A stretch of DNA of 64,000 nt from Podarcis melisellensis (Eukaryota): the NCBI GenBank assembly GCA_964234715.1, contig OZ174287.1. One strand, 5' to 3'. How positions within the stretch are numbered: the stretch's first letter is position 1; each line of letters begins with the position of its first letter. Under the pieces are notes generated by a model. It ran no database searches. It saw nothing but the letters and a program-made list of their open reading frames with translations, and had not been told where the DNA came from. Made by a program: the position numbers and the translations under genes. Shown in pieces: positions 16,831 through 50,425 of this stretch.

Positions 16831-17823
16831 GAGTAGAACTTAGTTGGATACAAATCATTGATTTTAATGGGTGTATTCACTGTATGATTAATTGGATATC
16901 ACTCAGGATCCTAATATGTCCTCCCTGCTTTGATATCTGGGCACCCAAATTTGCCTTTGTTCTTCTGGGTATAACTTTCATGAATGATTCCCATAGTGGC
17001 AAAGGTTTGTGCAAGAGCTGAATTTGCTCAATCATAGCTCAACAAACACTGGACAACATAGCTAAGGCTTCCTGCAAGAAGTTGAAAGCTGTGAAGTCAA
17101 GTGCTCTGACAAGCTTGGCGTACTGGAATGTCAACACAACATCCTTGGTTTGATCTGGTCAGCCAAAGAGGTTTTTTTCTGCCCCCACCCCCCAAGGCCT
17201 TACCAATTTTGATGATGTGGCAAAAAAATAAAAAATAAAAATTAGGTAGAGCACTAGAGTGAGCAGAGGGACCTAATGCCCTGGTTAGGTTGCAAACCAC
17301 CTCCTGCCCAGTTGGCAGATTGATCTGGTGGCCACAACCTCCCATCTCAGATGATCTGCATAGAGTTGCAAGTGTGTGAGGTGGCCACACACACACACAC
17401 ACACACACACCACTGATGGACAACACCTGAAAGTTTTTGGCCAAGGGTGAATGTGGCTCTCAAACCAAAAAAAGCTCTGCTTTGGATAAAATGCCAAAGC
17501 TACTTTTCAAACAAACTCTGCTTTGTTCAGTCGTGCCGCTCCGAGATCTTTCACAGCAAATGCACAGGAATAATATGAAGCATTTTTAGTTAGCGTGTCT
17601 CCATTTAGGCGCATATTGAAATAGACCTATTTCTCAAGTTTCTTGGTTCTGCTTTTATGCCTTGTCTCAAGCAAAGAAGACATGAGTCCAGGGGAGAGAC
17701 CTGCACCTTTTAGCTGGAGTTTGAAAGCCTGCAGGCTCCTGCTGCATGAACCGTCTCTGCCTTCCTTTTCAGATGCTGCTCCGGTAACCGACTGAGCATC
17801 TCTCCTGGCCAACTGGAGGCGCA

Positions 17824-18438
17824 ATGGTCCCCCTGTGCTGGTGCTGCCCGCCAGCACCTGCACCAGCTGCGGCGGCCATGACGGGCACGGCCACAACCTC
17901 CTACCACTTCAAGAGTTTCTGTGGGGAGTTTGAGCGGGTGGAAAGCGCCCTGGAACGCCTTGAGGCCAGCGGCTTCTACTGGGGCAGCCTGTCTGGGGCC
18001 GAAGCCAAGCGCCTTTTGACCTCCCAGCTGCCCGGCGTCTTCCTCGTGCGAGATTCCTCCGACCACCACCACCTCTTCACCCTGAGCGTCCGCACCAACA
18101 CGGGCATCACTAACCTGCGCATCCAGCAGCAGGGCTCAGCTTTCCACCTGGAGGCCTTGCCAGGCGCTGGCCACCCCCCGGCCTTCCACTGTGTGGTCCG
18201 GCTAGTAGAGCACTATCTGTGCCTGGGAGCAGTAGAAGGGGGGCCCTGCTACCTGGAGAGGGAGGGGCAGCCCCCAGTGCCTTTGGCCCTCACCCATCCT
18301 CTCTGCTGCAAAGTGCCCACCTTGCAAGAGCTGAGTCGCTGGGCAGTGCGTGCCAGTATGAGGGGCAGAGGCGATGCCAGGGCTCAGCTGCAGGGGCTGC
18401 CAGTACCGCAGGGACTCTTGAACTCGCTGTGCACCTGA
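17824..18438 (+). CDS. Suppressor of cytokine signaling 3-like (probable SOCS3b ohnolog), 204 aa, single coding exon
   Basis: ORF with a KIR-like segment (YHFKSF), ESS helix (FERVESALERLEASGFYW), SH2 (GVFLVRDSSDHHHLFTLSVRT...NLRI) closest to SOCS3 (GTFLIRDSSDQRHFFTLSVKT...NLRI), and a C-terminal SOCS box (VPTLQELSR...LPVP). Strong Kozak context gcaATGG. Upstream acceptor ttccttttcag at 17762-17772. AATAAA at 18537-18542 and 18927-18932. Confidence 0.9.
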   Translation: MVPLCWCCPPAPAPAAAAMTGTATTSYHFKSFCGEFERVESALERLEASGFYWGSLSGAEAKRLLTSQLPGVFLVRDSSDHHHLFTLSVRTNTGITNLRIQQQGSAFHLEALPGAGHPPAFHCVVRLVEHYLCLGAVEGGPCYLEREGQPPVPLALTHPLCCKVPTLQELSRWAVRASMRGRGDARAQLQGLPVPQGLLNSLCT

Positions 18439-20874
18439 AAGGCTCTTTTCCTTCCTAACATTCCTTGTACAGTACATAAGCAGGCCTGTCTGCACAGTGT
18501 ATTGCTGGGGGCGCCTGTTTATCATTATATTTGTGGAATAAACCAACTGGTATACTGGGGGCAGCCATCTCTTCATTCATCAAAAGCCTTCAAATTCATT
18601 CTGATGCTCTCAAGATGTCAAGTATCACCAGAAGCAGAGAAAAGGAAAAAAGCTGCCTATTCCAGGGCCTGGGTGGGCTTGTAACACAAGCCCCCATCTC
18701 AAAAGCACATCCAGAGAAAGGTATAAAGAACTCCTGCTTTTGGGAGGAGTTGCATCCTTGCAGGTTCACACTTGTAATCTTGATGGCCTAAGATGTAACT
18801 GTTGCCCTAGAACAGGTAAGGGTTCTCTTCTTCACCAGAAAGTCACTAGGAGATGCACTGCTCAGTGTTAAATGAGGGGTAGATGCAGTAATCTAGCAAC
18901 AATCAGAAGTGTAGTAATTTTGTCAGAATAAACCAGTCTTCTAAGTGTGAGCAACCTCCGTTCCTTCAGATGTTGAACTAAAAGCCCCCTCATCCCTGAC
19001 CACTTCTCATGCTTGTTGGGCTGATGGGAGTTGCAGTTCAGCCACATCTGAAGGGACAAAAGTTCCCCATACCTGTTTAAATGTGCCACAAGCCAAGGTT
19101 CTTAAAACGTTTAGCTAGAAATTGTGCACTATGCTACAAATGAGAAGCCCTTGCTTCCCATAGTGTGTGGGGAAGGATGTGGGCATTCCATGACCGAGGA
19201 AAAGGCATTGTTTGTACAGATCAGACTGGTGTTCTGTTGCAAAGGGATCCTTCTCCCACTCGCTTTTCATGTTTGACCACCACCACATCCCATTTTTCTA
19301 CACGTGACACAAATCTTTCCAGTCACTGCCCTAAGGGCAGGTCATTACTGTAACTTGACAGGCCTCGAGAATGTTGACACAGGAAACTAGTTGTTGAGAG
19401 AAAGACGTTTTGAGGCAAAAAGAAAGTACAAGCTCAGCTAATCTGATGCTGCATCTGGCGACTCTTTAGCTTGTGTATGTTTTCATAAACAGCCTGGTGT
19501 GTGCAAAGGCCATGTCACTGGGGAGCCTGGAAGAGCAGAGGGGGCCACAGATCTGCAGCAGTGTTTAAAGAAAGCAGTGACTTCTAGTTTATTACTAGGG
19601 ACTAGGCTATACCAGTGAGCATATATGCTCAACACTTGCCATGCACTCAAACCCTGTACATACCAGCAGGAACCTGCCATACCAGATGTGTTAAAGCTTT
19701 AAAACAAAACAAAAAAAACATTTTAGACAAAGCTACCTTTGTCTAAAACTGCACCTGACCAATTAATAATTGAAGTTAATTTTTGTATCCTGTGCTGTTC
19801 CAGTTTACCCGAACGTTAATTCGAGCCACCCTGCCCCCATTTAAATCAACTGCAGTCACGGGTTGTCTGATTTCAATCTTATTCTTGGGTTGTAGATTCT
19901 GCATTTCTTGTTGGCAAGCCAGATCTCTTACTGGAAACTCTGGGAGTCCCTGCCAATTTGTCTCCAAGGCGAGGTGACCCAGAGCTTCAAGCTGCTCTGA
20001 TGAAACTTGAAGGCTAATTTAACTTCAACTTCTGTTTGCTTGGAAGTCTCCTTAAAAGCAATGAGACACAGCACAGATGGGAGGTGCATGCAAAGTTGGC
20101 ACCCAAAGAGCTCAATTCTGCTCCCGGACCCCAAATCTCTCACTTTTCCACCTGCCATCTGTTCCCGTAGATTTGCCTCCGGGAAAGATCCCAACTTGTT
20201 TCCTGCCAATTTCTTTACTCATCACTCACCTTTATGCTATTTTCAGCAGCGATCGTTTCCATCTACTGGAGATAAGGGTTGCAATTCAGCTACACATATA
20301 TGCATGCTAATTCCAGGAATAATCCCCCTTGAGTGTACAGAAAAACAAGGGGTAGTATTATGGGTCCAGGGAATGAATGACCCAGGTGGCCAGTGGGAAT
20401 GGCCTCCTCTAGATTTGTTTCGACTTTCCAAGGCAAGGGGGAGGGGGTTGGCATAAGACAAAAAACAACTGCTCCTTGTTTATGGACCCTTCTGTGTGCA
20501 ATGGAGTCAACCATTTCATAGATGGAAAAGAGGCATGTATATGTTAAGAGTACAGTATTGGCCTCAAATGCACTGTACCCTCCTCAGCCTGTACCCTCCA
20601 CTACTAGCCCCATTCCTAACCAACAATTGGCTGCTGCTCCTTCCTATGCAGATGTCCTGTTTGCTAGGAACCAACCTCAACTGAGTTTCTCATCCGAACA
20701 GAGCGCCCCATCCAAGATCACTTGTTGCAGGTATTATCAGGTATTTTCAAGATGCACCCCCGACACTAGAAGGGCTACAATATTTTATCCACAAATATTT
20801 TTTATTGTGTAATGTTACAGTTAAGGCAGGCTTGATTCCCCACCGGCATGTGCGGAGGGGGGGCACCCCACAGC

Positions 20875-21075
<201 letters not shown>

Positions 21076-21993
21076 TTACAGACGTTCCAGCTAAACCCGG
21101 CAGCATTCTTCTTAAGAACGGTTTTTCACAGTACTAGAGAGCTACAGTGATTGACGGAAGAGAGCCAAGTGAGGAATCAAGTGATCACCCCCCAATTCCA
21201 GCACTCAGGGAGTTTAAAATTTAAAAGCTCAGCGTTTGGGAACGTAGACATTAACATCCTGCTCCTATTATCAAAGCCAGGGTTAACCTCAGCCACTTCC
21301 TTAATTAACACTGCAATGAATTCCTAAACACGACACTCGGAACTAAGTCCCACCATTCAATAGGCTTTTCTTACACATTAATAAGTGTTTTACAATACAA
21401 CTCAATGCAACTATGCCCTCACAACTTCTTACTCGCAAACTGGTCACAGAACAAAGGTTCAGAACCAACCAACAACAGGAAATGCTTGAGAGAAACTGAC
21501 TCAAGTTTGACATTTACTGCTGTTGCCCTCAGTATACAATGGCAAGATGAATGCCTGGTTATCCTGAAAACTGGGCGTAACAGCATACAATTTGCTAACG
21601 AGGGATAACATTAACACTTTGTGCCAAGAAGGAGCAGAGTTGCTAGTTGTTACCTCTACTGCCTACACGCCAAGACCTTCGCAAGGTGTACGGCTGAGCC
21701 GCAGTGAACCTTGCCGAAATTGTTGGTGCTTTTGGCATACAGCCTCATTAGGCAGACTGCAGGGCTTTTAGGTTATCCAGGGTTCCAGTCCAGGGCAGGG
21801 ATTGGTGGGGTAAAAAGATACACGGCTGGGACATGTCCACACATCTCCCTGCACAGGCCACACATAAGAGACATCAGATGCATTACTTCAGAGGTAGAGC
21901 CTGTCTTTACAGCCCACAGCAACTCAGTCATTGCTTCTGGCTTCATTCTGCTTAAGTGAAATGCCATTTCTAAACATACTCCAAGGCAACCTA

Positions 21994-22230
<237 letters not shown>

Positions 22231-23078
22231 CTAGAGAAGTGGGCAAAAGATGCATGTATTTTGGTACGTCTTATGTGGCCATGTAAAAAGCATTCTCTAT
22301 GAAATGCTAATGACGGGTGGGGGAGAGAAGAGGAAGAAATGGCACCAAGTTGACGCCAGCATTTGAAACTCCCTTTGTTCTAGGCGCATTTTGCGACAGG
22401 GAATTTCATTAGTGTGAGCAGTTTCTGAGCTCTGGGTGCAGTACTGCGCCTAAGATTTCATATTAAAATTGCCACTGCTAGAAGGAAAGGAGGACCCTTT
22501 TCTGCCTCCCCACTTTCAGCCATTCTGAAGACTGGAGAAGGGACCCTCATAAGATTATAGGGGTGGGCAGGGGAAGTATGGATTTGTTTTTTGCAGTCTT
22601 CAGATAAGGACCAGACCATGTGAAAACTGAATTTAAGATTTTACCTGCAGTTCATTCATTTTCAGCTTTGTATTCTTGTTATGAAAAAGTGAACCTAGAA
22701 ACTGTTGCAGCACCCATAACCTAGGTTTAAGGTGCCATTTAGCTCCTAGCTTTCATATCTCAGTTTCTAACACAGGTTGACACGTTTAGTTACATACTAC
22801 TAAGCAGCACTATAGTATATTACATTGACCTTGAAATCACAGTTTAAATCCCAACTCAGCCACAAATGGTGGGCAGTCTTTGAGAAGACAGTCACTCTCA
22901 GCCTTAGTCTCTGATCTGAAATATGGGACTGATTTAAAAGATTCTCAAGACAATATATAAATATAATTACAGCAGGAAAAAAGAACAATTCAACATAGGT
23001 AACTGATATTAATCCAATAGATATGGTCTATTCACTTAAATCTAACACAAGAAATAAGCACATCTGAAAGGCATTAAA

Positions 23079-23079
23079 T

Positions 23080-23139
<60 letters not shown>

Positions 23140-23154
23140 ATCATAAAGTAGTAT
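23079..23154. repeat. (CA)n(GA)n compound microsatellite in RPS9 intron 3
   Basis: Direct read. Confidence 0.95.
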
Positions 23155-23432
23155 TTACAATAATATCTATATATAACACATTGAAATCTAAAACCAGATA
23201 CCATCAACTAACCATTATGGAAAGATGTAAACATTACAACTGTCCATAACAGTAAGTTGATAATCTCTGGTTTTAAATTTAATAGGACCAGATCCAAGAA
23301 ACTGGTAGGATTCATAAAGGAAGTGAACTCACATCACAGATCCCTTAATCTGCTGGTAACTGTTAAAGGGATCCGCAACAGCAAAAGAACCATTAAAGAT
23401 GCTGAAGACTGACATGTCCAGCCCTAACATAC

Positions 23433-23555
23433 CCTCAAAGAGACGCCTCTGATCCTTCTCATCCAGGGTGAGCAGCTCTCTGGCAGCTTTACGGATCTTG
23501 GCCAAGGTGAACTTCACCCGCCACACTTCACGCTTGTTACGCAGCCCATATTCAC
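23433..23555 (-). CDS. RPS9: RPS9 exon 3
   Basis: [40 protein letters not shown]; 123 nt with AG/GT boundaries. Confidence 0.98.
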
Positions 23556-23653
23556 CTAGGAGGGGGATATAAAAGTTCAAATGTAACATGCACCTGCCTT
23601 TGGAGCGTAACTGTTTGTTTGAACAACTTATTTTTTTCATCCAGGATAAACTA

Positions 23654-23758
<105 letters not shown>

Positions 23759-25240
23759 CTAAAGGGAGTCCAGTCCTGTGGAGAAAAAAGGTGAGATCTA
23801 TAGAAGTGGCAGGCAGATGAAACAAGTGAAGCAAATGAAGTTTTGATATATTTCACAGCTACTTCTCTGTATAATTTATTACAGTCTCTCATTTCATTTA
23901 TACATTCATCCAAACCTATGACGTAGGCTAGTCCGGCCAGGAATTTCAAGTCTAATGCAAGCCTTTCCTACTTGTAAGGTCAATACTACCCAATGAACCA
24001 CACCACCCAACTGAGTTCAGGGTAAATTCAATACAAGTTTGTTTTTTGGAATCTAGCCTGACCCTTAACTGACACTACTGGACACCAGAGGGTCACAATT
24101 GTTCTTTGTAAATTTGTGTTGAAGCCCTTAAGGTGATATAAATCATGGAAGTTTACCCATTTGAAAGGGGAGAATAGTTTGTTGAAGCAATATGCCACTT
24201 TGGACCACTTGCTATATCCTAAAGAAAGCAGCTACAGTCAGCATTAAACACTGCACTAAATTTCAGTGCAGATACTGAATTACAGCAAGCAACTAAAGTA
24301 CACTTTTTACAATAAACCAGCAAGGCCCTTTGGCCCCTTTTAAAGTCCTGTCCTCCACAAACTAAGCTAAGCAAGACCTGTAATATATGTGGCACAATTT
24401 ACTGCTACTTCAGTATTTTAATATGGATATAATTTGAGCAGGAAAAAAGAGTGTGATTCCATATAACAATGGTTAAGCCCAAACGCTCCCAACTGAGCAG
24501 GGAGATATGAGAATTTGTGAAATGCTCAAAGATGTTATGGACCATGAGCAAAATAATCTCAAAGAAAGGCACATTCCCTACTCCTCATATCAAGGATGAT
24601 TTTGCATAAGCAGCATTCACCCACCCAGCCTCTGGGAAGGAAACATTTAACACTGAATCAACTCACACTGACCAAAGTTTTGAAAACGATTCCACCAAAA
24701 TTATAGAAAAAAGGGAGCACCTAGAAATAGCTGCTATTTTTTCAGCAACACGTGGGGTGACACCAAGTCATAGAATTGCAGAGTTGGAAGGGACCAAGAG
24801 GATCATCTAGTAGGCATCTTTCTGGCCAACGTGACACTTGTAAAATTCACAAGACAGGGAAGGCTAATTCCCCTTTAATTCAAATCACGTGAGACCGGCG
24901 GTTCGAGGGAGCGTGTTTAATCCCCACCATCCACGAATCCCCTGAATAGGCCGAGCAGCACCGCGGAAGCAACCACGCGACACGTGTGATCTGCGCACGC
25001 GGGGCTGCCCTAGTTCTATAACCCGCACATGCGCACTGAGCGAGTGAGGCGGGGGCCGCGCGAATAAAGGCTCCAACTCCCTGATTTAAAGTGGATTCGC
25101 AACCGCTAAGGTACTTCTAGCAGCTGGTTGCCGAGAACAATTTATTTGGAGTCACTTAAAACGTCCTTCTCGGCCACCGGGGCGCTTCTTATTCCCCGAC
25201 ACCGCGCCTCGGGTCGCCATGAAAAAAAACCTCCGCTTAC

Positions 25241-35444: not shown

Positions 35445-35475
<31 letters not shown>

Positions 35476-35950: not shown

Positions 35951-38930
35951 GGTGGGGTGGGGGAGAGAGGTCACACCCACATCATACATTTAAAGCATAT
36001 GACTCCTCACAGAGCTACAATTCCCAGCACCCTTAACAAACTACACTTCCCATGATTCCTTGGGGGAAACCATGCTCTTTAAATGTATAGCGTGGCTGCG
36101 GCCAGAGATTAGGACGAGGGAACATTGCTTGTGGTTTTACTGGAAGTCTCTGCCTGGCCTGTTGCGTGAAACAGGATGTTTGCATTGGATCAACTTTTGG
36201 TGCGATCTGATAGGGTTCTTGTTTTCTGCGAGACAGAAATAATCACAAAGATTAGTTCTTCGCAGTGAATTCTGAAACACTGTTGGATCAAAAGGCCTGT
36301 CAAACAGGCCAGGAGTTTTATCTTCCTTATACCCTTAAAGGACATTCAAAACACATTCTTTTCATCAAAGAATTCTAAGCTTTGTAGTTTACCCCTCATG
36401 AGTTGCAGTTCCCAGAAAGCCTTAAGAAACTACACTGCCTCAAATTCCTTGAGGGGGAGGGGAATGTGCTTTTAATGTGCTTTAAAGCTCTAGTGTGTAT
36501 GCAGCTTTGGACAAATTCAATGTTATTCTTGACAAAGTAGCTAATGAGTTTTATTTCAGGATCCTGTCACCCCTACTGTTCCAACAGCTGGAAAGTTTTT
36601 TTCCTGAGTTATAATCAAAGCCCTTTCTCTTGCAAAGTCAGTGTGTTCCCTCATGTACAACCCTCCAATATTTCCCTCTCTTTTTCACCTCTCGCTCTAT
36701 ACATGCTCTGGTGCCATACTGCGGGCTGGAGTGGTGGGACTCAGGCTACCATTGGCTTACTTTCCATGATGTCACCCAGAGGGTAGGGCGTCCTGGGTTG
36801 AGACCTTGGACCTTTTTGGCCCAAATGCTTTCTTCTGCAGACAAGGGCAGATAAATCCATAGGGAAACAAATGATTGTTCTAGTAGCCCTTTCAAGGACA
36901 GGCTAATCAAGGCCATTTGGGTGATGTCAGAAGAAGCAGTTTGGTGGGAAGTCCCATGACTTCATGATGGGCTCGGGAGAGAGGATGTGACATTTCTCTT
37001 TGCTTCATCAAGAAAAAGTCTATGGGCTCACCACAGACTGTTTGCCAGGCTTCTCTTAATGTAGGGATTCATATATTTTCCCTGGAAAATCCAGCTGGAT
37101 TTCCATTTCTGGTATAACTTTTTCCATGTAACCACCCCCAAGCCTTCAGAAAAGAGACACCTCCAACTAGAGGATTAAACTGGTTTAACAGTCAATTCCC
37201 ATTCCAACAAAACCCTGGGAATTGTAATTATTTTGGAGGAAGGGGCTAGACACCTCAGCATCTTCACCAAACTACAGTTTCCAGAATTCTTTTTTTGGGG
37301 GGTGGGGGTGGGGGGGAGTAATGGCAGTTAGAGAGGTATAAAACAGTTTATATAGCCATGGCAGTATATTGACTGTTTTAGTTTTTTTCAGTTTTAGATC
37401 TGAAAAATACATCTGCACAGTTTAGAGTTCTGCTTCTGAGGCACCAAATGGACAGGTGGTTGGCAGTGAATGGAAAGTGGGATAGATAAAGTAATTGACA
37501 GGGAGTTGGTAAAAAGTTTCCATTGGGGAAGACCCGGCCTCAGCACCCAGCATGTCAGGGCAAATGTCAGGACCCTCCTGGATGGGTGCCACCATCCTTT
37601 CATATAAATTTTTCCTAAGCATTTCGATAGGGGAGCAACTGCTGCCACAGCCATCTTTATCACCTAGAATGTCTCTAGGCCTCAAGTCCATGGAACCCAA
37701 AGGCATTCTGAGGGGAGGGAAAGATGATGGCAGCTATAGCTGCTTTCCTCAGCTGCTGGTAACCTTCTGGGGTGTCCGAGTGAGGTTGTGGGGAATGAGA
37801 ATTGGTAGGGATGGGTGGTGGTGCTGAGCCCAACACGCAGCAGAGCAAGGGCAAGGCACTGGTGTCTTCATTTGTCTGGAAAGACCCACCAGCATGGCAG
37901 TGTGGAGGACTGGAGGAATAGCTTGCTGAGGACCCATTCACACTGGGCGCTGTAGGGCTAGATGTCAGGAGGTCTGCATGTGGGGAAAAGAGGAGACTGG
38001 AGTCACGTGGCTGGGAGGGTAAGTAGTACTGTAGTTTGTTAAGAGGATGAGGAGTGGAGGAATGTTTACGGTCATGAATGGAAGGAACGGTTTCTGCCCT
38101 AGTCTAGGGAAGTGTGTAGCCAGATTTGTGGTGGAACCGGATTAAACATGAAATAACAGATGACTGGAGAATGGTGCTGTAGGTCCTGAACAGATGTGTA
38201 AGGGCTGAAACCACAGAGAATTTGTTTACATTTGGGGGGTTGAAAAAAACACACACACACCTGACATCTGTCCTCCATTCTCTCTCATTGACTGCATCTC
38301 AGTCCCAAGATGTAGAATTCTGGAAGAAAATTTGAATGCTTGCTTATTTACTCTTACGCCCGGTCCTAGCGTTAGGCAGAGTGAGGCGGCTGCCTCAGGT
38401 GGTGGATGGTGGAAGACAGGCAATGGCAGCGAGGTGTTGGACAAAGCTGTGTGTCCCCTAGGGGTTTCTCTGCACCTCCTAAGCACGTATGCTGCCCTCA
38501 GGCAAGGTGGAGGAGGCTAGCCTGTCGCCTGCCTTCAGCTCTCAGGCTGCATATGCACCATGTCTTTAAAGCACATTGAAAGTACATTGATTCCCCCAAA
38601 GAACCCTGCGAATTGTAGTTTACCCCTCACAGAACTATACTTCCCAGCACCCTTAACATACTGCAGCGCCCAGGATTCTGCGTGGGGAAGCAAGATGCTT
38701 TCAATGTGTGATGTGTGTACAACCTAGTCTCATTTCTTCCTTACAAGTAATAGGAGGGTGCCATCTTGTATCAGGCAGCGAAAAAAGTTTGGGTCAGCCC
38801 AGCTGCTTTGGCTGATTCTTATAAATGCCATATTATGGGTTGTGGACAAACCTAGCTTTTGACATTTTAAAATGTGCTTTAGAGAAAGACCTTGTCCCCT
38901 TTCTTCCTCTGCCTCTTGCCTCCCCTGCAG

Positions 38931-39064
38931 ATGGTCTGTCCCAAGGCCGGGCTCCCCTGGCCCCTCCCTATGCTGTGGTCCTGATCTCCTGCTCAGGCTT
39001 GCTGGCCTTTATCTTCCTCCTCCTCACCTGCCTGTGCTGCAAGCGGGGCGATGTGGGGTTCAAG
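38931..39064 (+). CDS. LMTK3: LMTK3 exon 2 (transmembrane helix, palmitoylation-type CLCC motif)
   Basis: [45 protein letters not shown], recognisable as LMTK3; AG/GT boundaries. Confidence 0.97.
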
Positions 39065-40239
39065 GTGAGCCTGGTTGTGGGGATTTGAGGTGGTCATGGA
39101 ATGCTTTGGGGAAGGGATGTTGTTGTTGTTGTTATTTGCTGAAAGGCATTTGTGGCTTGTATTCTGTGAAGCTAAACAGCATCATGGTTTGGAGTGTACA
39201 GTTTCCTAAGCAAAACCTATAGCCCTCCCATTAGTCCCTGAAGGTCAGGGATGATGGGAGGGACACAAGTTCCCCATCCCTCATGTTGGTGAGAAGACCT
39301 TGTACCAGCGGTTAGCCCCATTGGGCATTTCCTGTGGGCCCCATTACTCTAAAGTGCTCCTCACCAGCCTGATCTGCTGCCCACTAGCTCACCATTGGGT
39401 CCAGCTCCACCGCATAGCAGTTGGCTAGCAACCTCCATCTCCTTGCTTGGGCACTGAGAAAGGGGCCAAAGGAGCTTTCTTCTCAGATTCTGGCATTCTT
39501 GGTGAGATGGCTAGGCATTGCCTGCGCTACTGCGGTGTGCTGTGATCGCTAAAAAGGCTTTTGAAAATCATTTATTTTTTTGAAAAAGTTAATAATCATA
39601 GACTTGTACAGTTGGGTCCAAGAGAATTGTCTAGTCCAACTCTCTGCAATGCACGATTCTTTTGCCCAAAGTGGGGCTCAAACCCACAACCGTGAGATTA
39701 AGAGTCTCATGCTGTATTAACTGAGCCGCAAGAGTAGAAAGGAGCGCCAGAGGTCAGTCCTCTGTGTTTAAAAAGTCTTTCGAGCCACCATGGCAAACCA
39801 CAGAAGTGACGGCGGAGGCATTCTCCAGGCCACCACATCACCAAAATGCTTGTGTCTATAAAGGATGTCTTTGGCCCTTTCTCAGAGCCCAGGTGCTGAG
39901 GGAGGTGCCAGCGAAGCTGTTATTGTAGCCGTGAAGAATGTTTTTAAACAGGATTAAGAGAGACGTCAGGGCGGAAGGGAAGAGGAGGGCGGCAGTGTTG
40001 TCCCACAAAGGGGAAGATCAGGTGCAGCAGGGGTACCTCTGGTGATGGTGGTGTTGCATTGGCCATGCCAAGGTCCCCATTAAACCTGGCACCAGCCCTG
40101 TTGGTGGGTTCTGATGCTTGGGGATGGCAAGGCCATGGGGAAACACTGAGGTTGCTAATTCAGGCAACAGACTGGGAAATAATGGGGAAACCAGCAGAAT
40201 ATCTTATCATCCTTACACTCACCTCTGCCCACCTGGCAG

Positions 40240-40390
40240 GAATTTGAGAACCCTGATGGAGAAGAATATTCTGGAGAATACACACCACCTGCAGAGGAGA
40301 CGTCCTCCTCTCAGTCTATCCCGGATGTCTACATTCTGCCTCTCTCAGAGGTCTCTCTCCCGTCCTCCAACCAGCAGATGCCCAAAACAG
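40240..40390 (+). CDS. LMTK3: LMTK3 exon 3
   Basis: [41 protein letters not shown]...; AG/GT boundaries. Confidence 0.96.
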
Positions 40391-40936
40391 GTAAGATTCA
40401 TTGGAGAGGGCATGCATGCACCTGCCTGTCTCTTTATCTGCTGATTTGCTACTGGGTTAGGTTCAAGGTACTTGTGTTTATCCACAAAGTCCTAAACAAC
40501 TTGGACTCAAAGTGCCTTGGGGACCACCTGATTCCTCATGCTCCACCTTGATCACTGGGATCCTCTGATGGGGCCCTTCTGTTGGCTCCCCATGGCCTTA
40601 AGGATCAGTTGGCCATCTCTAGGTCCCAGGCCTTTTGTATGGCAGACCTTGCCCTGTGGAACTGCCTACAAATGGAGGCTTGGCAGGAACCATCTCTCTC
40701 TTCCTTCAGACGTCGTTTGAAAACTTTTTCTTTTACAATATCCCCCCCTCCCCTCATAGCCAGCCAGTATTTACTGATATTTATTGCTGTTATTATGGCT
40801 CTTCTGATTTTACCCTTATATGTGTACTCTGCCTAGTTCTATTTTTATGGAAGTGTGGATTATAAATTTGTAAAAATAAACAAACAAATCCCACACCAGC
40901 TTGGCCCCATATAGATGGCAGACAAGCTAGAGGAGG

Positions 40937-41265
40937 TGAATGTTAGAAAGATGTTGGTTTAGAAATTAAGGGTTTTCAGCTGTAATGATTAAGTAAAAAG
41001 AAAAGAAAGGTTGAAAATTAAATGAAAACTAAGGGAGAGGATTTGCTGAATTAATAATTAGAAATTGGAATACAAAAAGGGGAGGTATGAGGAGGTCGGG
41101 GAAGTAAGTTATAAGAAAATAAGGGAATGAAACTTTACTTGTATTTAAATAGTTTTTAGTTTTGTATTTTTTTATATTTGTTATTTTTTGTGTTTGTGTT
41201 TTGTTTTTATTATTGTTTTTTCTGTATAACCTTTGAAACTTTAATAAATATCTTTTTTTAAAAAA
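40937..41265 (+). mobile_element. L1-type 3'UTR retroposed fragment
   Basis: AATAAA plus A tail; 17-bp TSD AGACAAGCTAGAGGAGG (40920-40936 and 41266-41282); resembles the 3'UTR of the 30996-31488 element. Confidence 0.7.
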
Positions 41266-41611
41266 AGACAAGCTAGAGGAGGAATGGGGAGCTTTTGGTC
41301 CGCCAACCCTGGCCATTTTCTGTGTTTCCTAGGGCTGATGGAAATTGTAGTTCAGCAACATTTGGAGGGCCAAAGGTTCTCCATTCTTGCCCGGAATGAT
41401 AGGTGGCCTACAAAGGGAGAAGCAGCGCTCATTATATTTGCCAGGAAGCTGGTACCATCCTGCCCCATCAGCTGCTGCTGCTAGCTTATGTCCCAGTAGC
41501 TTGTCTATTAACTTTTGAACGTGGGGGGGAAACGAAGTTGGGAGGTTCATGCTCAAGTCATTGGGCCATGACATTGACTTCTGTTACTGCCACGCTCTGT
41601 CTCTCTTTCAG

Positions 41612-41688
41612 ATCTAGTTAAACACTTGGGACTCAGCAGACAACACCTCAGTTATTTGCAGGAGATTGGAAATGGCTGGTTTGGAAAG
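41612..41688 (+). CDS. LMTK3: LMTK3 exon 4 (kinase Gly-rich loop)
   Basis: [21 protein letters not shown]; AG/GT boundaries. Confidence 0.97.
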
Positions 41689-42682
41689 GTGAGCAAAAGC
41701 TTGTTGTTGGGGATGTGATTTTTGTTGCGGGACCCAAGGTTCTTTCCTGCGGGCTTCAGTTTTATTCTGAGGGAATATGAAGAGCCACTGTAAGTTTAAA
41801 AATAGCAATAATTTGAAATATTATTATGAAGCTAACAACAACAACAACAGAGTAACAGGACACTTATGTAATGCAGATGCACAAAATGAAACAACAGTAA
41901 ATAAAACAACAACCATGGTTACATCCGCGCCATATATTTTAAAGCACATGGCTTCCACCAAAGGATCCTGAGAAGTGTAGTTTGTTAAGGTTGAAGGGAA
42001 TTGTAGCTCTGTGAGGGGTAAACGACAGTTCTGCAGATTCTTATGTCCTTTAAATGTGTGTTAAATGCTCTCTAACTGTGTAGTGTGGGTGTGACCAGTC
42101 AATTGCACAATACAGGAAAAATAAATAAATCTCAATATTGGGTGGAAAGGATAAAAGAAAACCTACAGCCATCTTACATTTAAATAACCAGGATCAAGAA
42201 GGTCCTCTCTCTCCAGTTGCCACCTGCCTAAATTTAGATTAGAGGGACATAGAGAGAAGCCTTCAAAAATGAACAGAAGGTTCAGTGAGTCTTGTGTGGT
42301 AAAAGGCGGTATCCGGACACAAAGCTGGGTAGGGCTTTATAGGTAATTACGAATTACCTTTGAATTGTGCCCAGAAATGAACTGGCAGTCAGAGTGGCCC
42401 TGTAACAACTGGTGAGATGTGTTCTGTTTAGTTGGTTCCAGGCTGCATACATATCCCTGGCTTAAATCGCTCCCAGGTCATTCTTTTTCTGAACTCTGAA
42501 GCTAGTTTGGAAGAGGAAAAAAAATGGATGTGCAATGTTTCATAAGAAATGACAGGATAGATATGGATCGTGGCCAATGTCGTGGACACCGCTTCCCTAA
42601 ACCAGTGGTAGGATCACACTGGATGGGAGCGTGTGTTCACAGCTCTGGTTAGTAACCGTTCCCCCCCCCCCCTGTTCCACAG

Positions 42683-42801
42683 GTAATCCTGGGTGAAATA
42701 TTCTCAGATTTCACCCCTGCACAGGTGGTAGTGAAGGAGCTACGGGTGAATGCTGGGCCACTGGAGCAGAGGAAATTCCTGTCAGAGGCCCAACCATATC
42801 G
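42683..42801 (+). CDS. LMTK3: LMTK3 exon 5 (VVVK catalytic lysine)
   Basis: [40 protein letters not shown]. Confidence 0.97.
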
Positions 42802-42994
42802 GTAAGAAGCAGGAGAAACTGAAGTGGGAGGAAGAAACAAGGGGCAAAATATCCCCATATAAACAGCTACCTTATTTTGAGGCGGCTGCTGCAAGAGCTA
42901 AAGCTGTCCATGATTCCAGTAAGTGTTATAACTCATGCCAGTCTCCCCAGTAGCCCATCATCATGTAATAGGGGAGACTCCAGTAACACAATTG

Positions 42995-43244
42995 CTGTTG
43001 TACCTCAGAAGTTGAACAGCTTAATTCCCAAACGTTTTGGCTCCCGAACACCCCAAACCCAGAAGTGACTGTTCCGGTTTGCGAACTATTTTTGGAAGCT
43101 GAACGTCTGACGGGGCTTCCGCGGCTTCCGATTGGCTGCAGGAGCTTCCTGAGGCCAATCAGAAGCTGTGCTTTGGTTTCCGAATGTTTTGGAAGTCGAA
43201 TGGACTTCCGGGACGGATTCCGTTCAACTTCCAAGGTACGACTG
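42995..43244. mobile_element. Tc1/mariner-type MITE (family A)
   Basis: Right TIR ccaaggtacgactg followed by TA; internal similarity to 8222-8448. Confidence 0.8.
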
Positions 43245-43353
43245 TACTCCCTGCTCTAAATAAAAAAGCCTGGCGGAACATAAGAAAAGGGAGGAGCATA
43301 GGAAAGAAGGAATCTTTTTTAAATGGATTTATACTCAACCCAGTCAAGCTTTG

Positions 43354-43608
43354 TGTTAAGTTGTGGGTGATGTGGGTGAACACAGCGATTCTTCAAACAG
43401 CTCTTGTTTATTCAGAGGCCAGAACAGAACTGAACTGAAGGGTTCAGCCAGCCTGCTTATATAGAGCTCCAGTACAACGTAACTGTAACAACTTTTTGTA
43501 ACTATCCAATCACTGAATGTTACTTTCGATCCCTTATTTGCATATGTGGACCTGAACTATCTACAGTATCCCCCTGCTGGCCCAGGGTGAGAACTTCAGT
43601 ACATAACA
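43354..43608 (-). mobile_element. Solo LTR (255 bp)
   Basis: TGTTA...TAACA termini; 5-bp TSD CTTTG (43349-43353 and 43609-43613); minus-strand TATATAA and AATAAA. Confidence 0.8.
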
Positions 43609-43793
43609 CTTTGCTTACTTTGGAATGTAGTGTCAGCTCTTTTTAATTTTATTTGCTAAAATGCAGTTGGGGTACACTTTCAGCCCTCGAAAACTGAGCA
43701 GAAACAGGTGCCGCCTCTTTGTGATGAATGGAACAAAACCTTCTTTTCCCCTCCTCTTTCTGCCCTTCTCTCCGTCCACCCACTTCCCTCAAG

Positions 43794-43881
43794 AAGCCTC
43801 CAGCATCCAAACATACTGCAATGCCTCGGTCTGTGCACAGAGACCATCCCTTTCCTGCTCATCATGGAATTCTGCCAGCTG
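43794..43881 (+). CDS. LMTK3: LMTK3 exon 6
   Basis: [29 protein letters not shown]; tandem AAGAAG acceptor. Confidence 0.96.
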
Positions 43882-44159
43882 GTAAGTATCCTTAAGCCGA
43901 GAGATGAATTTGGGTGGGAAAACACAAACGGGATAGATTGCTCTTGCCAGGGGTCCAAACAGATCGCTGTGGGGAGTGGTGGGAAAGGTTCTCCCAACAT
44001 CACTCCATCTGTTTGGCCATAGCTGCCAAGTGTCCTGGGAAAAAAGGGACATTCTGTTTTTTCACGTGAGGTTGGGGAATTTGCTTGGGTCTGTAGGAAA
44101 CTTTGTGCTAGCTTCGCTGACTTTGCTCGCCATCCCTTTTCTCACCCGTGTTCCTCCAG

Positions 44160-44308
44160 GGAGATCTGAAACGTTACCTTCGAGCTCAGCGCAAAGCAGA
44201 CGGGATGACCCCTGACCTGCTGACCCGTGACCTCAGCACACTACAGCGCATGGCTTACGAGATCACTCTGGGAGTGCTACATTTGCATAAAAACAACTAC
44301 ATCCACAG
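44160..44308 (+). CDS. LMTK3: LMTK3 exon 7
   Basis: GDLKRYLRAQRKADGMTPDLLTRDLSTLQRMAYEITLGVLHLHKNNYIH. Confidence 0.97.
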
Positions 44309-44451
44309 GTAGACCAGAGACCACGATCCTTGGGTTTTTCAGGAAATGTTGAGCTGTACGGAGCTGTGTATGGTTTAAGCTCTGGAACTCAAAAGGGTTT
44401 TGCTGATCAATGTGCATTTTAATGATTTGAAATGTAGTGGGTCGTACTCCA

Positions 44452-44848
44452 GACGGAGGTGGCGCTGTGGTCTAAACCACTGAGCCTCTTGGGCTTGCCA
44501 ATCAGAAGGTCGGTAGTTCGAATCCCTGTGATGGGGTGAGCTCCTGTTGCTCCATCCCAGCTCCTGCCAACCTAGCAGTTCGAAAGCATACCAGTGCAAG
44601 TAGATAAATAGGTACCGCTGTGGCAGGAAGGTAAATGGTGTTTCCATGCACTCTGCCTTCTATCAAGGTGTGAGGTTGCGCCAGAAGTGGTTTAGTCATG
44701 CTGGCCACATGGCTTGGAAAGCTGTCTGTGGACAAACATCGGCTCCCTTGGCCTGAAAGCAAGATGTATTCCACAGCCCCATAGTCGCCTTTGACTGGAG
44801 TTAACCATCCAGACGTCCTTTACTTTACTTTTACTTTAATTTACCTTT
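44452..44848 (+). mobile_element. Sauria SINE (second subfamily)
   Basis: Head ggtggcgctgtggtctaaacc, B box, (ACTTT)n tail. Confidence 0.9.
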
Positions 44849-45663
44849 GAGATACAAATTCAGTCCCGTTGAGTATAGCTTGAGCAGGTCGGGGCAGAAC
44901 AGATGTGTGAACCTGCCTATCTGCTAAGCTCTTCTGCTGAGGCCTTACTCGGAGTGTCTCACATTTGAAGGTGAGGGGGGCATCTAAAACAGGACTTTCC
45001 TCTGGTGCCACCCAAAGTTTGTAATGCTTTGTTGTCATTCAGCAGAGCAGTTGTAACTGGGGTGGGGAGTGATGGGTAAAGGCAAATTTTGTCTAGCTTC
45101 ATCTCAGCCTATCTTGTTTTTCGTTTGTTTTTAAACCCCTCCATAGGCTTCAGGGGTGGGAGATCAACTATGCCAGCTACAGGCTGGTATAGCTGATTAG
45201 CTTCATTCTGGGATTTTTTTGGGGGGTGGAAAAGCTTTGTATCCAGGGCCATTCCTGCTCTGCCCACCCCTGGCAAGAATGCATCATTTTACCAATAGAA
45301 TTACTGCTTTACACCATGGGATTTCCCATGGCATACAGGGGGGACACTGGGTTTGGCTCCCTGCAACAGAAAAACTCCTATCTGCCCCCTCCCTAGCCCC
45401 TTCCAACCAGTGGACCTGGTCTTGTGATGGTGTCCATTACAATTTTTTTCTACTGATTTCCCCCCCTATTTATCCAAGCTCTTGGTGGCACCTGATTAGT
45501 TAGTGCTATTCTGTTTATTTTGGGCCAATTGGCTGCATTAAATTAAATAAACAGAAAGGGAAAGCTGGTGAAGAAAGGTGCCCTTTACTCTCTCTCTCTC
45601 TCCATCCCCTGGCCCACCCACCTCCAAGCCGCCCTTACTGGGTATTTTTCTATCCCTCCCTAG

Positions 45664-45748
45664 TGATCTGGCCCTTCGGAACTGCTTGCTGACCTCTGAC
45701 CTCACAGTGCGCGTTGGAGACTACGGCCTGTCGCACAACAACTACAAG
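45664..45748 (+). CDS. LMTK3: LMTK3 exon 8 (catalytic loop, DYG)
   Basis: (S)[28 protein letters not shown]; DYG in place of DFG is typical of the LMTK family. Confidence 0.97.
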
Positions 45749-46176
45749 GTGAGGGGCGGGGCCATCCATGCCACAAGGCCCCTGCAGGTAGATTGAAATG
45801 TGTTTGCCCATGTCTGGTGACATCAGGTTTTTGAGGGTGATCCTCCGGCATAATTTCCAATCAGCGCATATATAGTAACTTCCTGCTGAAATCCCTTTTT
45901 TTTCTATCACAAAGGATCTGGTTTATTTTTGTCCTGCTTTTGTTGTTCTGTAGCAGTAAGGTGGTAGCATTGAGGAAGCATCACAAAACTGTTAATAAAG
46001 CAGACGAAATCAACCAGTAAATGCACCAATGTTGTGTCAGGGACATTTTGTGGAATATACGGTACCCACAGAAAGACACCTGCTTGGAAAGGCTCAACAC
46101 CCTATTTTCATCTGTGAAGCTTTGGAGAGTCTGCATCTCCAGTCCTGTTCCACCCATTCCTCATATCTGTTCATAG

Positions 46177-46298
46177 GAAGACTATTACATCACTCCGGAC
46201 CGGCTATGGATCCCTTTGCGCTGGGTTGCCCCAGAACTGTTGGATGAGATGCACGGAAGCCTCATTGTCGTGGATCAAACCAAGCAGAGCAATGTCTG
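46177..46298 (+). CDS. LMTK3: LMTK3 exon 9
   Basis: [41 protein letters not shown]. Confidence 0.97.
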
Positions 46299-46366
46299 GT
46301 GAGTTGCAAAGAGACACACACACCCCACACACCTGCGCTTGAGGGAATTCACAGCGCAACCCTATA

Positions 46367-46611
46367 CAGTGGTACCTCGGGTTACAGACGCTTCAGGTTA
46401 CAGACGCTTCAGGTTAAAGACTCCGCTAACCCAGAAATAGTACCTCGGGTTAAGAACTTTGCTTCAGGATGAGAATAGAAATTGTGCTGTGGCGGCGCAG
46501 CAGGAGGAGGAGGAGGCCCCATTAGCTAAAGTGGTGCTTCAGGTCAAGAACAGTTTCAGGCTAAGAACGGACCTCCGGAACAGATTAAGTTCTTAATCTG
46601 AGGTACCACTG
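46367..46611. mobile_element. Tc1/mariner-type MITE (family B)
   Basis: TIRs cagtggtacctc / gaggtaccactg with TA TSD. Confidence 0.88.
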
Positions 46612-46613
46612 TA

Positions 46614-46847
46614 CCTTGGTTCTCGAACTTAATCCGTTCTGGGAGTCCGTTCGACTCACGAAACCATTCAAAAACCATGCCACAGCTTCTGATTGGCTGC
46701 AGGAGCTTCCTGCACTCAAGTGGAAGCTACGCTGGATGTTCGGCTTCCGAAAAACATTCGCAAACCGGAACACTTACTTCTGGGTTTGCGGCATTCTGGA
46801 GCTGATTTGTTCGGCTACTAAGCCGTTCAGGAACCAAGGTTTGACTG
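46614..46847. mobile_element. Tc1/mariner-type MITE (family A), left end disrupted by the family B insertion
   Basis: ccttggttctcgaac...ccaaggtttgactg followed by TA. Confidence 0.8.
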
Positions 46848-48914
46848 TATGTCTATTCAGAAGTAAGCACCACCAAGTTTAACGGGGCTTACTCCCAGGT
46901 AACTGTGCAAAGGATTGCAACCTTAGTTTGCATTTTTGCACCCCTGGATCCAATTGGGCTAGAGCAGAAACAAACTTGGTTTTAAAATCCTCAAGGGAAT
47001 GCTCCGAACTTTGCTTACAAATATTAAAATTCATATCCACCATGTTCAGTGGTGGGGAACCACTGGCCAGTGGGCCTAATTAAGCCCAGCAGGCCTCATA
47101 TGACTCATGAGGCTGTTTCTGCTGAGTCATGACCATCTGTAAATATGTAGTAATGTGGGGTTTACAGGCACCACACGCCAGCTGATCTGTGCTTTTGCAA
47201 AAGCTGATCATCAGTACTTTGCCTGGCTGTGTGCCTTCAAAGCACATTTGCAGGCACTCTTTGGTGTCAAACCATACCTGCAAACGTGACATTTTCCCTC
47301 TTCATTTGCAAGTGCAGCCTGACTGCAACCCTCCCCTGTAAAGAAACTTCAAAGGGCGCTCTTTGAAGACGTACTGTCAGCCTCAAACAGCTGATTGGCA
47401 CTAACACCATGCCTTCAAAGGAGCTTACTCTCAGTACCCATCAGCTGATTGGTGCTGAGAGTGAGCCTTTTCCAATTGGTTACCTGATGTCATGACATCA
47501 GGTGATTGACAGGTGGGCACCCACTAGTTTAAAAATTGACCAGCAGGGGGTGAGGGGAGATAAGGGATCCAGCTGGATCCAGTTCAATTCTGACCTAGTT
47601 GATTTGAATTTTTAAAATAACATGTCTAGTTTATGGATGCTCTTTTGGTTTAGGGATTTTGTGAGAGTCTGGGAGCCTTATTGCTGTTTCACTTCTGCTT
47701 TGATTTCTGGTTGTGTTATTTTGTTGTTGTGTGCTGCTGTGTGATAATGTACTGTCAGCCTCTCTGTGGTCCCACTGAGAGAAAAAGGCAGGAAACAAAT
47801 ACAAAAAAACAAACATACACATAAATAAACCAACCCAGGGTATAGAATTTTCAATCTGGTATGTTAATACCTTATATTATTTCATGTAACACTTAGAATA
47901 ATTTATTGTTAATGCCCCTCAAAAACCAACATTTGTAATCTTGAAATTTCAGACATCTTCTTTTTTTAATGGTTACATTTGTATTTACAGGGAAAATGGT
48001 GTCTAGTGCCACCATATAAGCTCTCAATACTATCGTGTTCCTTTCCATCAGGTGTGAGGAACCTCTGGCCCTTCATATCTTGCTGAACTACAGCTCCCAT
48101 TACTTCTGACCATTGGCCATGCTTGCTGGGTCTGATGGGAGTTGTAGTCCATCAGCATCTGGGAGGGAGGGCAAATATTTTTTACCACTGCTTTACCCCT
48201 AAGGAGTGCGATAAAGGGGAAGACTGTAGTTTTGCAGACATTTAGGAAACGTACTATGTGTATTCTCAGGGACATCTTAATCTTCAGATGTTCTAAGACT
48301 CAACCCTAGGTATTGTACTTCAGTGATAGAGCCTCAGCCATAGGAACCAACTCCTAGGGGCCGAGGTCCCTTTGTCCACTCCCAAATAAATTATTCTAAG
48401 AGTAAATAAATAAACTGAGGGAGCCCTTGAATAAATTATTTGAGGATTCCCTTAGTTGATGGGCATTGCCATTCAAATGGTGTGTGATCAATTATGTGGG
48501 ATGGGACTTACCTGAACCCCCCAATATTTTATTCAAATTGGCACCCCTGGCTCTGCCTCGCATGCAGAAGCTACCAGGTTTGATCCCTGGTGTCTCCAGG
48601 TGTGAGCCTGGGAAAAGCTCCTCCCTGACACCTGCTGCCAATCAGACTAGAGGATACTGAGCTAGATGAGCCAATGGTTAGACTCCGTATAAGGCAGCTC
48701 CCTGCTTTCCTGAAACAAATCCCTGGGCTGCCATTTCCTTTATTGTCTGGGCTGAGATTCTTGGTTTTGTGGGGCTAAGCAAGAAAGGGTAAAAGGGGTG
48801 GGGTTATAAGGCCTCACCTATGGCACCTGCAATGATTTTCTTCTTTGTTTTCTGCTTGCTTTCTCTGGAGTCCATAGTTCTGGGCTTAATCTCTTTGTTC
48901 CCTTTGTTTGCCAG

Positions 48915-49064
48915 GTCTATGGGGGTGACCATCTGGGAGCTTTTTGAGTTTGGCTCCCAGCCTTACCGTCACCTCTCTGACGAGGAAGTGCTGACCTTTG
49001 TCGTCAAGGAGCAGCAGATGAAACTGGCCAAGCCACGCCTTAAGCTTCCTTACTCTGACTATTG
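48915..49064 (+). CDS. LMTK3: LMTK3 exon 10
   Basis: [50 protein letters not shown]. Confidence 0.97.
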
Positions 49065-50425
49065 GTGAGTTGATTCCCCTGTTCTCCCTCCTGCCCCCCA
49101 TAAGAAAAAAAAGGTATTTGTTGTCCTCCAAAGAAAGCAAGGCCCACCAGCTGGGATACCTTCTTCCCGAGTCTCCTCCATCCTTGACATCTGTTGGTGC
49201 CTCCTGAGCAGCTAGTGACTTGGGAGTGGCTGCTGCCCTGTGCATTAAGATTGTTCTTGTCCTCCTAACGTTCTTTCATTCTTCCCTCTCTGTGTTCCTC
49301 CAATTATTCCTCCGCCTACCTGCCCATTTCCCTACCTGCACTGTTATTCTGCCAGGTCTTCCTCTGGTTGTGTGACGTACCTTTTCCTTGCCTGCTCTTC
49401 CAGCTGCACTGGTGATCTGTGAATCAAATTCCCTCCTTCCAGATTTGTATTTTCAGACCATTCTTCTGGCAACTTTTCCAGTTGGTTGTCTGTTTTTTGG
49501 GTTATGGATCTCCTTTTGGATGTTGTTCATATCCGTATAAGGACATATCTACACCACAGGCTTATTTGTAACTTTTATTCAATATTAAGCAAAATTTTAT
49601 ATAGCGAAGAGAGAGAATCCCCACCATCCCAACCACAAGACGTATGCTCGTGAGTAGGGATGGTGGGAGAAAATAGATTCAGTTCACATTTGAAGGAGAA
49701 TCTATCACACTTTCCCAAAACAATATGTGAACTGAAACGCAGGCATCTTTTGAAGTTTGAAATTTTGCGATGCAATTCTCCAGCCAAACTATGTTTTACA
49801 AAATGCACATATTAAGAAAAGCTGTGCCTAAAAGTGAAAGTAATCGCGAAAATAACACACAAAAATACATCATAACTGGGGGGAACGCTTGGCGAAAATG
49901 TGTATATTAGGCATAAATTGCATTATGAAACATGAGTGTATTAGGAGAAATTTGCACCAAAATGTTGATGAATTTTTGCGAGGATTAAAAAAATATCAAG
50001 TGATGTGGAAGTGGGGAAAACTGAAGACTGGAAAAATGAGAAATTCCAACTGTTGCCTTTTCATGTCTGCTTGTTGTTCTGACTGTGTCTGCTAAGGCTT
50101 CCAATTGGCTTTCCGACTGTTCTCTGTAACTGCCCCACAACCCATCTCCTGACAGCTTCCCCACATATCACTGCCCATTCTAGTACTCATGCCCCCTTTA
50201 GCTTCTGCCTCTTTTTCTGTCTCCAACTCTATTCGCGGTGCCTGCAACCATCTTTTCTGCAACTCTATTATTATTATTTTTTTAAAATGTCCCCATTTCC
50301 TATCCCCACCCCAACTGTTCTCTCAGGCTATCTCCCCCCCACAACTGTTTCCCCCCTCCTCCTCCTATTTCTGCCTGTTTTTCCGACTGTTCCTCTATCC
50401 TTCCTCCGTCCCTGCCCCGCTGCAG

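Follow-up and report, generated by a model that had tools for sequence, protein, structure and literature searches.

The SOCS3b gene and its domains

A gene of the SOCS family was analysed in a 64,000 nt stretch of DNA from the lizard Podarcis melisellensis (contig OZ174287.1). The whole stretch is called the window here, and all coordinates are window positions. The gene, SOCS3b ("SOCS3-like" in NCBI naming), lies on the + strand. It is followed tail-to-tail by RPS9 on the - strand and then by LMTK3 on the + strand. The evidence set out below makes it very probable that this is the lacertid member of an ancient sister group of SOCS3.

In the open reading frame (ORF) listing of the window, the frame at 17824-18438 (+) starts with ATG and continues for 204 codons with no internal stop. 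The features of the gene are:

17824..18438, + strand: SOCS3b coding sequence, a single coding exon of 204 aa plus stop
17836..17847, + strand: N-terminal cysteine cluster, residues 5-8, with three Cys in the first eight residues; disordered in the structure model
17878..17880, + strand: second in-frame ATG, Met19, identified from alignments
17905..17922, + strand: kinase inhibitory region (KIR) hexapeptide His-Phe-Lys-Ser-Phe-Cys, residues 28-33, aligning with SOCS1 His54-Arg59
17923..17928, + strand: shortened linker between the KIR and the extended SH2 subdomain (ESS), two residues fewer than in SOCS3, mammalian SOCS1, lamprey and hagfish
17929..17970, + strand: ESS helix, residues 36-49, from the AlphaFold2 model
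17974..18216, + strand: SH2 domain, Pfam residues 51-131, E 5.4e-12
18313..18435, + strand: SOCS box, Pfam SOCS_box residues 164-199, 24.4 bits

The hallmarks of the SOCS family, a central SH2 domain and a C-terminal SOCS box with BC and Cul5 boxes, are both present in the window protein. So is the mark of the KIR-bearing members, an essential Phe directly upstream of the ESS helix. The phosphotyrosine-binding residues Arg76 and Arg99 of the SH2 domain are invariant in the alignments. In the SOCS box, Leu167 of the BC box is invariant and the Cul5 box has the canonical form Leu-Pro-Val-Pro. The long PEST insert is absent from the SH2 region of the window protein and of SOCS3b generally.

A sequence search against solved structures returned SOCS3 as the top match (4gl9_E, E 3.8e-32), then SOCS2 and SOCS1. 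An AlphaFold2 model was built from a 58-sequence alignment (mean predicted local distance difference test score, pLDDT, 75.6; predicted template-modelling score 0.71). It has a disordered segment at residues 1-26 (pLDDT < 50), the ESS helix, an SH2 fold, and a SOCS box made of three helices at residues 167-178, 185-190 and 196-203. Superposition with Foldseek aligned the model with SOCS3 in the JAK2/gp130 complex, 4gl9, over 128 columns (template-modelling score 0.87, root-mean-square deviation 1.5 Å). The model also fits full-length SOCS2/ElonginBC. An earlier note on this DNA had described an intact KIR-ESS-SH2-SOCS box protein, and the reading frame, the Pfam matches, the structure matches and the model all bear this out. 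Pairwise ratios of nonsynonymous to synonymous substitution (Nei-Gojobori) among the window, Zootoca, Anolis sagrei, Rhineura and alligator sequences range from 0.09 to 0.20. The window SOCS3b is a real, intact gene under purifying selection.

Phylogenetic placement

A word-index search with the window protein returned 28 relatives, and every one above 48% identity was a "SOCS3-like" protein. These come from squamates (Zootoca at 97%), an amphisbaenian, anoles, alligator, turtles, a caecilian, frogs, a newt, coelacanth, lungfish and sharks. Identity to the "SOCS3-like" proteins is 51-97% and to true SOCS3 only 37-41%, in keeping with the earlier note's remark that the protein is clearly diverged from SOCS3 proper. 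When 1.84 billion cluster representatives were searched exhaustively with HMMER, no more than two clusters fell below 1e-30; one has a tetrapod and the other a shark (Mustelus) as its representative. A profile made from 17 SOCS3-like sequences scored the members at 240 bits or more; the next matches, teleost SOCS3, reached at most 176 bits. The profile search added two further sharks to SOCS3b.

True SOCS3 was retrieved separately with a frog SOCS3 query. It was found in a lacertid Podarcis, python, tuatara, turtles, crocodile, birds, mammals and amphibians, as well as in coelacanth, lungfish, sharks, chimaera, gar, bichir and teleosts. Both true SOCS3 and SOCS3b are therefore on record in Microcaecilia, Latimeria, Protopterus, Pelodiscus, Pelusios and several frogs. 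Both also occur in the lacertid and python lineages; the lacertid true SOCS3 is the Podarcis entry P0269, and coexistence there is shown at the level of the lineage.

A maximum-likelihood tree was computed from 68 sequences under LG+C20+F+G4. True SOCS3 forms one clade (support 100/99), SOCS3b including the window protein forms another (92/90), and the two are joined with support of 100/99. The SOCS3b clade was recovered in 91% of bootstrap trees. It contains squamates, turtles, alligator, amphibians, lungfish, coelacanth and sharks, and branching within it matches the species tree. Lamprey is sister to SOCS3 plus SOCS3b (93/77), with SOCS1 and hagfish outside. Cartilaginous and bony vertebrates are present in both the SOCS3 and the SOCS3b clades; hence the duplication predates the gnathostome crown group.

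Two alternative topologies were rejected by the approximately unbiased (AU) test: one that puts the squamate sequences with true SOCS3 (p 0.0035) and one joining the SOCS3b clade to SOCS1 (p 0.0027). The proposal that the gene is a sister of SOCS3 thus agrees with the tree, and the outcome that the earlier note had set against it, a true SOCS3 or SOCS1 orthologue, was not obtained. We conclude with high confidence that the ORF is the lacertid orthologue of SOCS3b, an ancient SOCS3 sister that predates the split of cartilaginous and bony vertebrates and that most likely stems from the second vertebrate genome duplication (2R).

Taxonomic distribution

The earlier note had also proposed that the gene is kept in lizards and absent from mammals. 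Squamate orthologues are present, and the searches returned no mammalian member. Two word-index searches and one exhaustive search of predicted proteins gave no SOCS3b from birds, mammals or ray-finned fishes, and the upper profile-score band (240 bits or more) held no bird, mammal, chimaera or ray-finned fish. The unnamed Logan matches are softshell-turtle-like and squamate, not avian. Among cartilaginous fishes, SOCS3b was found in six elasmobranch sharks.

The class itself, which the earlier note placed in non-mammalian vertebrates, is in the literature. Wang, Wangkahart, Secombes and Wang (2019, Mol Biol Evol 36:393, PMC6368001) described "SOCS3b" in 2R vertebrates. By their count coelacanth, amphibians and reptiles (green anole, Burmese python) have two SOCS3 genes, against one in birds, mammals, gar and elephant shark. 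SOCS3b formed a sister clade of SOCS3/SOCS3a and was attributed to 2R with lineage-specific loss. The same study shows that the two teleost genes, socs3a and socs3b, are each co-orthologous to true SOCS3. The teleost socs3b genes, for example that of zebrafish, are teleost-specific duplicates of true SOCS3 and have only the name in common with the gene treated here.

Public names in this family are muddled (P0001, P0010, P0023, P0299, P0294, P0320). SOCS3b is labelled "SOCS3" in Zootoca and Chelonoidis and "SOCS1" in Pelusios, and NCBI uses "socs3b" for the true SOCS3 of coelacanth, zebra shark and bichir. Lampreys have at least two kinds of "SOCS3-like" protein, of about 250 aa and about 350 aa (P0130, P0038, P0377, P0379); the lamprey placement in the tree is that of the shorter kind only.

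Signatures of the SOCS3b proteins

The KIR is the first region in which SOCS3b has a character of its own. According to Liau et al. (2018, PMC5908791), the six SOCS1 KIR residues His54-Arg59 carry the JAK1 contact, with His54 as a mimic of the substrate tyrosine, Phe55 at P+1 and Phe58 indispensable. SOCS3b shares with SOCS1 the hexapeptide pattern His, aromatic, basic, Ser/Thr, Phe, and the essential Phe (Phe32 in the window protein) is unchanged in all the SOCS1, SOCS3 and SOCS3b sequences that were examined. The segment resembles SOCS1 more than it does tetrapod SOCS3, which differs at two of these positions: the pseudosubstrate residue is His in SOCS3b and Arg in tetrapod SOCS3, and P+1 is Phe or Tyr in SOCS3b and Leu in tetrapod SOCS3. 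SOCS1 and SOCS3 have a common spacing from the KIR Phe to the ESS helix, which SOCS3b does not keep. The two-residue linker deletion is present in 23 of the 24 aligned SOCS3b sequences, the exception being an aberrant Pelusios model.

Second, the N-terminus is distinctive. The first 15 or so residues of every full-length sarcopterygian SOCS3b contain two to four Cys and no Lys, whereas true SOCS3 has Lys6 and lacks the N-terminal Cys cluster. SOCS3 Lys6 has been reported to affect stability (PMC3876435). The cysteine cluster is a hypothetical palmitoylation site. The position of the second in-frame ATG is kept in SOCS3b and in true SOCS3 (Met at about residue 12), and Met19 is, from the alignments, a possible alternative start. 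The alligator protein model (189 aa; L003 9910-10000) starts at an internal Met, and an in-frame upstream Met restores a Cys-rich N-terminus; the annotated alligator model is probably truncated.

Third, the SH2 domain and the C-terminus differ. The first Phe of the SOCS3 SH2 Phe-Phe pair is aligned with Leu in all SOCS3b. A Cul5 box of the form Leu-Pro-hydrophobic-Pro is found in SOCS3b of amniotes, coelacanth, lungfish and sharks, and all SOCS3b stop 5-6 residues short of the C-terminus common to SOCS1, SOCS2, SOCS3 and lamprey. The window protein alone has Trp173 (18340-18342) where other SOCS3b have Arg.

Compared with mammalian SOCS3 (4GL9, 2HMH), SOCS3b thus has the same KIR, ESS, SH2 and SOCS box plan, with the phosphotyrosine arginines and the KIR Phe in common, and it shares the Met-Val start and the conserved second Met. 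It departs from SOCS3 in the linker shorter by two residues, the Cys cluster without Lys6, the lack of the long PEST insert, the Cul5 box (Leu-Pro-Val-Pro against Leu-Pro-Gly-Pro) and the missing C-terminal tail. SOCS1 lies outside the SOCS3 plus SOCS3b clade, and its Cul5 box, Ile-Pro-Leu-Asn, is atypical with weak Cullin5 binding (PMC5908791), whereas the SOCS3b box is canonical.

Gene neighbourhood

The neighbouring genes in the window are:

20800..24000 (approximate limits), - strand: RPS9, recognised by a C-terminal RPS9 motif at 20949 and by gene calls in orthologous loci
38825..57441, + strand: LMTK3, with verified exons searched individually

The last coding exon of RPS9 lies near 20900-20950. 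RPS9 is found 2-5 kb downstream of SOCS3b, in the same orientation, in Zootoca, Anolis sagrei, Rhineura, Alligator and the caecilian Microcaecilia, where it was identified by gene calls carrying Ribosomal_S4 and S4. Since the adjacency is present in the caecilian and in amniotes, the linkage is at least as old as the tetrapod ancestor. In Xenopus tropicalis, Heterodontus and Carcharodon, gene calling over 10 kb around SOCS3b gave no neighbour.

The LMTK3 exons at about 38.9, 40.2 and 41.6 kb correspond to human residues 19-70 (nearly identical), 69-115 and 118-148, and the large exon at 50436-52934 corresponds to human residues 388-878. Further kinase exons at 43.8-48.9 kb and the end of the gene at 57 kb were read by eye. 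For the large LMTK3 exon, a protein atlas returned no score as high as 0.9. Pfam found no match in nine long window ORFs, which are LMTK3 disordered tail or non-coding sequence.

LMTK3 is therefore near the SOCS gene as the earlier note had stated; the intervening RPS9 has no place in that note. The distance differs from the 16 kb given there: the first verified exon, at about 38.9 kb, is 20.5 kb past the SOCS stop. The 16 kb figure corresponds to a G+C-rich stretch at 34-35 kb that was not confirmed as an exon. The region 34000-35900 is G+C-rich (0.53), with low-complexity Pro/Ser-rich ORFs on both strands and no Pfam match; it may be an LMTK3 CpG island or 5' exon. Synteny with both LMTK3 and CYTH2 had been suggested as a check. 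The LMTK3 half stands, while CYTH2 is absent from the window, because six-frame motif scans of the window for CYTH2 (Sec7, PH) and SULT were empty.

Elsewhere in the window, ORF-like stretches with near-identical translations recur on both strands (2629-3051, 4154-4477, 8786-9100, 15456-15707 and 30200-30496). They are probably copies of one family of repeats of the short interspersed nuclear element type.

Flanking non-coding elements

The following elements flank the SOCS3b coding exon:

16880..17140, no strand assigned: conserved non-coding block common to Zootoca and Rhineura, a candidate promoter or first non-coding exon
17770..17787, + strand: putative 3' splice site (polypyrimidine tract and CAG at 17770-17772), conserved in five squamates
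17773-17787, + strand: upstream ORF of four codons directly after the acceptor, about 36 nt before the main ATG
18537..18542, + strand: AATAAA, a candidate polyadenylation signal read from the sequence, about 100 nt past the stop

Positions 17212-17250 were masked when the flanking sequence was compared. The block at 16880-17140 has about 78% identity to Rhineura over 228 columns. The four-codon ORF is kept, with differing codons and stops, in Zootoca, Rhineura, Anolis sagrei and a Logan squamate contig, and on this pattern it may be an element of translational control. Only one canonical interferon-gamma-activated site, TTCNNNGAA, is found upstream, at 16040. Between the 3' ends of SOCS3b and RPS9, a block at 19317-19492 recurs at 72-78% identity in Zootoca, Rhineura, Anolis sagrei and the Logan squamate contig. 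A search of 18439-25000 against Rfam returned no family.

Origin of the gene

SOCS3b most likely arose in 2R. The order of the tree, with SOCS1 outside, then lamprey, then the split of SOCS3 and SOCS3b, is compatible with a first vertebrate genome duplication (1R) followed by a gnathostome 2R. An ancient small-scale duplication of SOCS3, before the gnathostome radiation and independent of 2R, is unlikely but deserves to be weighed. From the tree it can be said only that the duplication came before sharks and bony vertebrates parted and, weakly (93/77), that it followed the branching-off of lamprey; no RPS9 linkage shows up within 10 kb in sharks or Xenopus. Both facts would suit such an event.

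Against a small-scale event, the branching order just described fits 1R and a gnathostome 2R, and LMTK3 adjoins SOCS3b. As background, human SOCS3 lies at 17q25 with AATK/LMTK1 and CYTH1, the paralogues of LMTK3 and CYTH2, which lie together at 19q13.33. Wang et al. (PMC6368001) arrive at the 2R model too.

Proposed function

The most likely reading of the protein, judged from its motifs, is that SOCS3b would be a JAK-STAT feedback inhibitor working by the SOCS1/SOCS3 mechanism, with different targeting or turnover. In such a scheme the gene would be inducible. The SH2 domain would bind a phosphotyrosine carried by a cytokine receptor or by JAK, and the KIR hexapeptide, with its His as a mimic of the substrate tyrosine as in SOCS1, would occupy the substrate groove of JAK. 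The SOCS box would recruit ElonginBC and Cullin5. The description of the protein as a JAK inhibitor has conserved motifs as its sole basis. The short linker, the Cys-rich and Lys-free N-terminus, the canonical Cul5 box and the short C-terminus suggest targets, location or turnover unlike those of SOCS3.

A different function is conceivable, though we consider it improbable. SOCS3b may have lost direct JAK inhibition and be only an SH2 adaptor, a Cullin5 substrate receptor like CISH/SOCS2, or a competitor for receptor phosphotyrosines. The linker deletion, which nearly every SOCS3b has after the KIR Phe, and the change of the first SH2 Phe to Leu would fit such a loss, and the canonical Cul5 box suggests an E3 ubiquitin ligase function stronger than that of SOCS1 or SOCS3. 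However, the six-residue JAK-contact segment is strongly conserved over more than 400 million years of SOCS3b, including the essential Phe, the P+1 aromatic residue and the pseudosubstrate His. Because this segment is conserved though otherwise disordered, it would still bind a partner.

A more elaborate form of the feedback-inhibitor reading can be offered only tentatively, and we doubt it. SOCS3b may be a JAK brake with a mechanism of its own and not just a redundant duplicate of SOCS3, held at the membrane by palmitoylation of the conserved cysteines at its N-terminus and resistant to turnover through Lys6 and PEST, that combines a SOCS1-type pseudosubstrate with a competent Cullin5 box. 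If this were true, independent losses in mammals, birds and ray-finned fishes would mark a rewiring of cytokine feedback.

Alternative identities

It is scarcely credible that the window gene is simply the lizard's true SOCS3 evolving fast: SOCS3 is the top solved-structure match and the NCBI name of the Zootoca and Chelonoidis entries, but a separate true SOCS3 exists in a lacertid Podarcis, python, tuatara, turtles and crocodile, the true SOCS3 clade (100/99) leaves the window protein out, and the identity between the two proteins is low; the coexisting gene, the tree and the AU test (p 0.0035) refute it. Just as untenable is a recent SOCS3 duplicate or retrocopy specific to squamates or sauropsids. 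The window coding region is intronless, as expected of a retrocopy, but that of true SOCS3 is intronless as well. Orthologues occur in sharks, coelacanth, lungfish and amphibians, the gene tree tracks the species tree, and the 5' leader holds a conserved site that resembles a splice acceptor. A recent retrocopy is excluded because the adjacency to RPS9 is conserved from caecilian to lizards. The lizard-specific retrocopy that the earlier note had named as the result that would overturn its reading thus finds no place among shark-to-squamate orthologues with species-tree branching and RPS9 synteny.

Points that weigh against the interpretation

Several observations count against SOCS3b being an ancient, 2R-derived JAK inhibitor absent from birds and mammals. 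In the protein, the Pfam SOCS_box score is barely over the cut-off of 23.5 bits. The BC-box Cys, present in all other SOCS3b, is Ser171 (18334-18336) in the window and in Zootoca. The two-residue deletion by the KIR could alter or abolish JAK inhibition, and the literature yielded no functional study of SOCS3b from a tetrapod or a shark.

As to distribution, the absence from birds is based on predicted proteins, and the profile search scored only the 8000 candidates that shared most words. G+C-rich genes on bird microchromosomes are often missing from assemblies. The 2R origin is something that we infer rather than demonstrate, and no RPS9 was found within 10 kb of SOCS3b in Xenopus tropicalis or in two sharks. 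The Logan contigs L004 (alligator) and L007 (squamate) are colinear with the genome and unspliced, and so are uninformative on splicing. None of the sequencing runs listed as holding the sequence is recorded as RNA.

Relation to the published class and significance

The gene described here belongs to the same class as the SOCS3b of Wang et al., and the present tree reproduces its position as sister clade to SOCS3. Both the class and its absence from birds and mammals were published in 2019, and the interpretation in the earlier note is correct, not new. For elephant shark the paper gives a single SOCS3; SOCS3b was found here in six elasmobranch sharks. The RPS9/LMTK3 synteny is absent from its main text and supplement, and the KIR, N-terminal and C-terminal signatures are not described in it. 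What is new is only the RPS9/LMTK3 linkage, the shark members, and the details of the KIR and linker, the Cul5 box, the C-terminus and the Cys cluster.

The RPS9/LMTK3 linkage provides a positional anchor by which SOCS3b can be told from SOCS3 in annotation. The signatures of the SOCS3b proteins provide concrete hypotheses for cytokine feedback in reptiles, amphibians and sharks.

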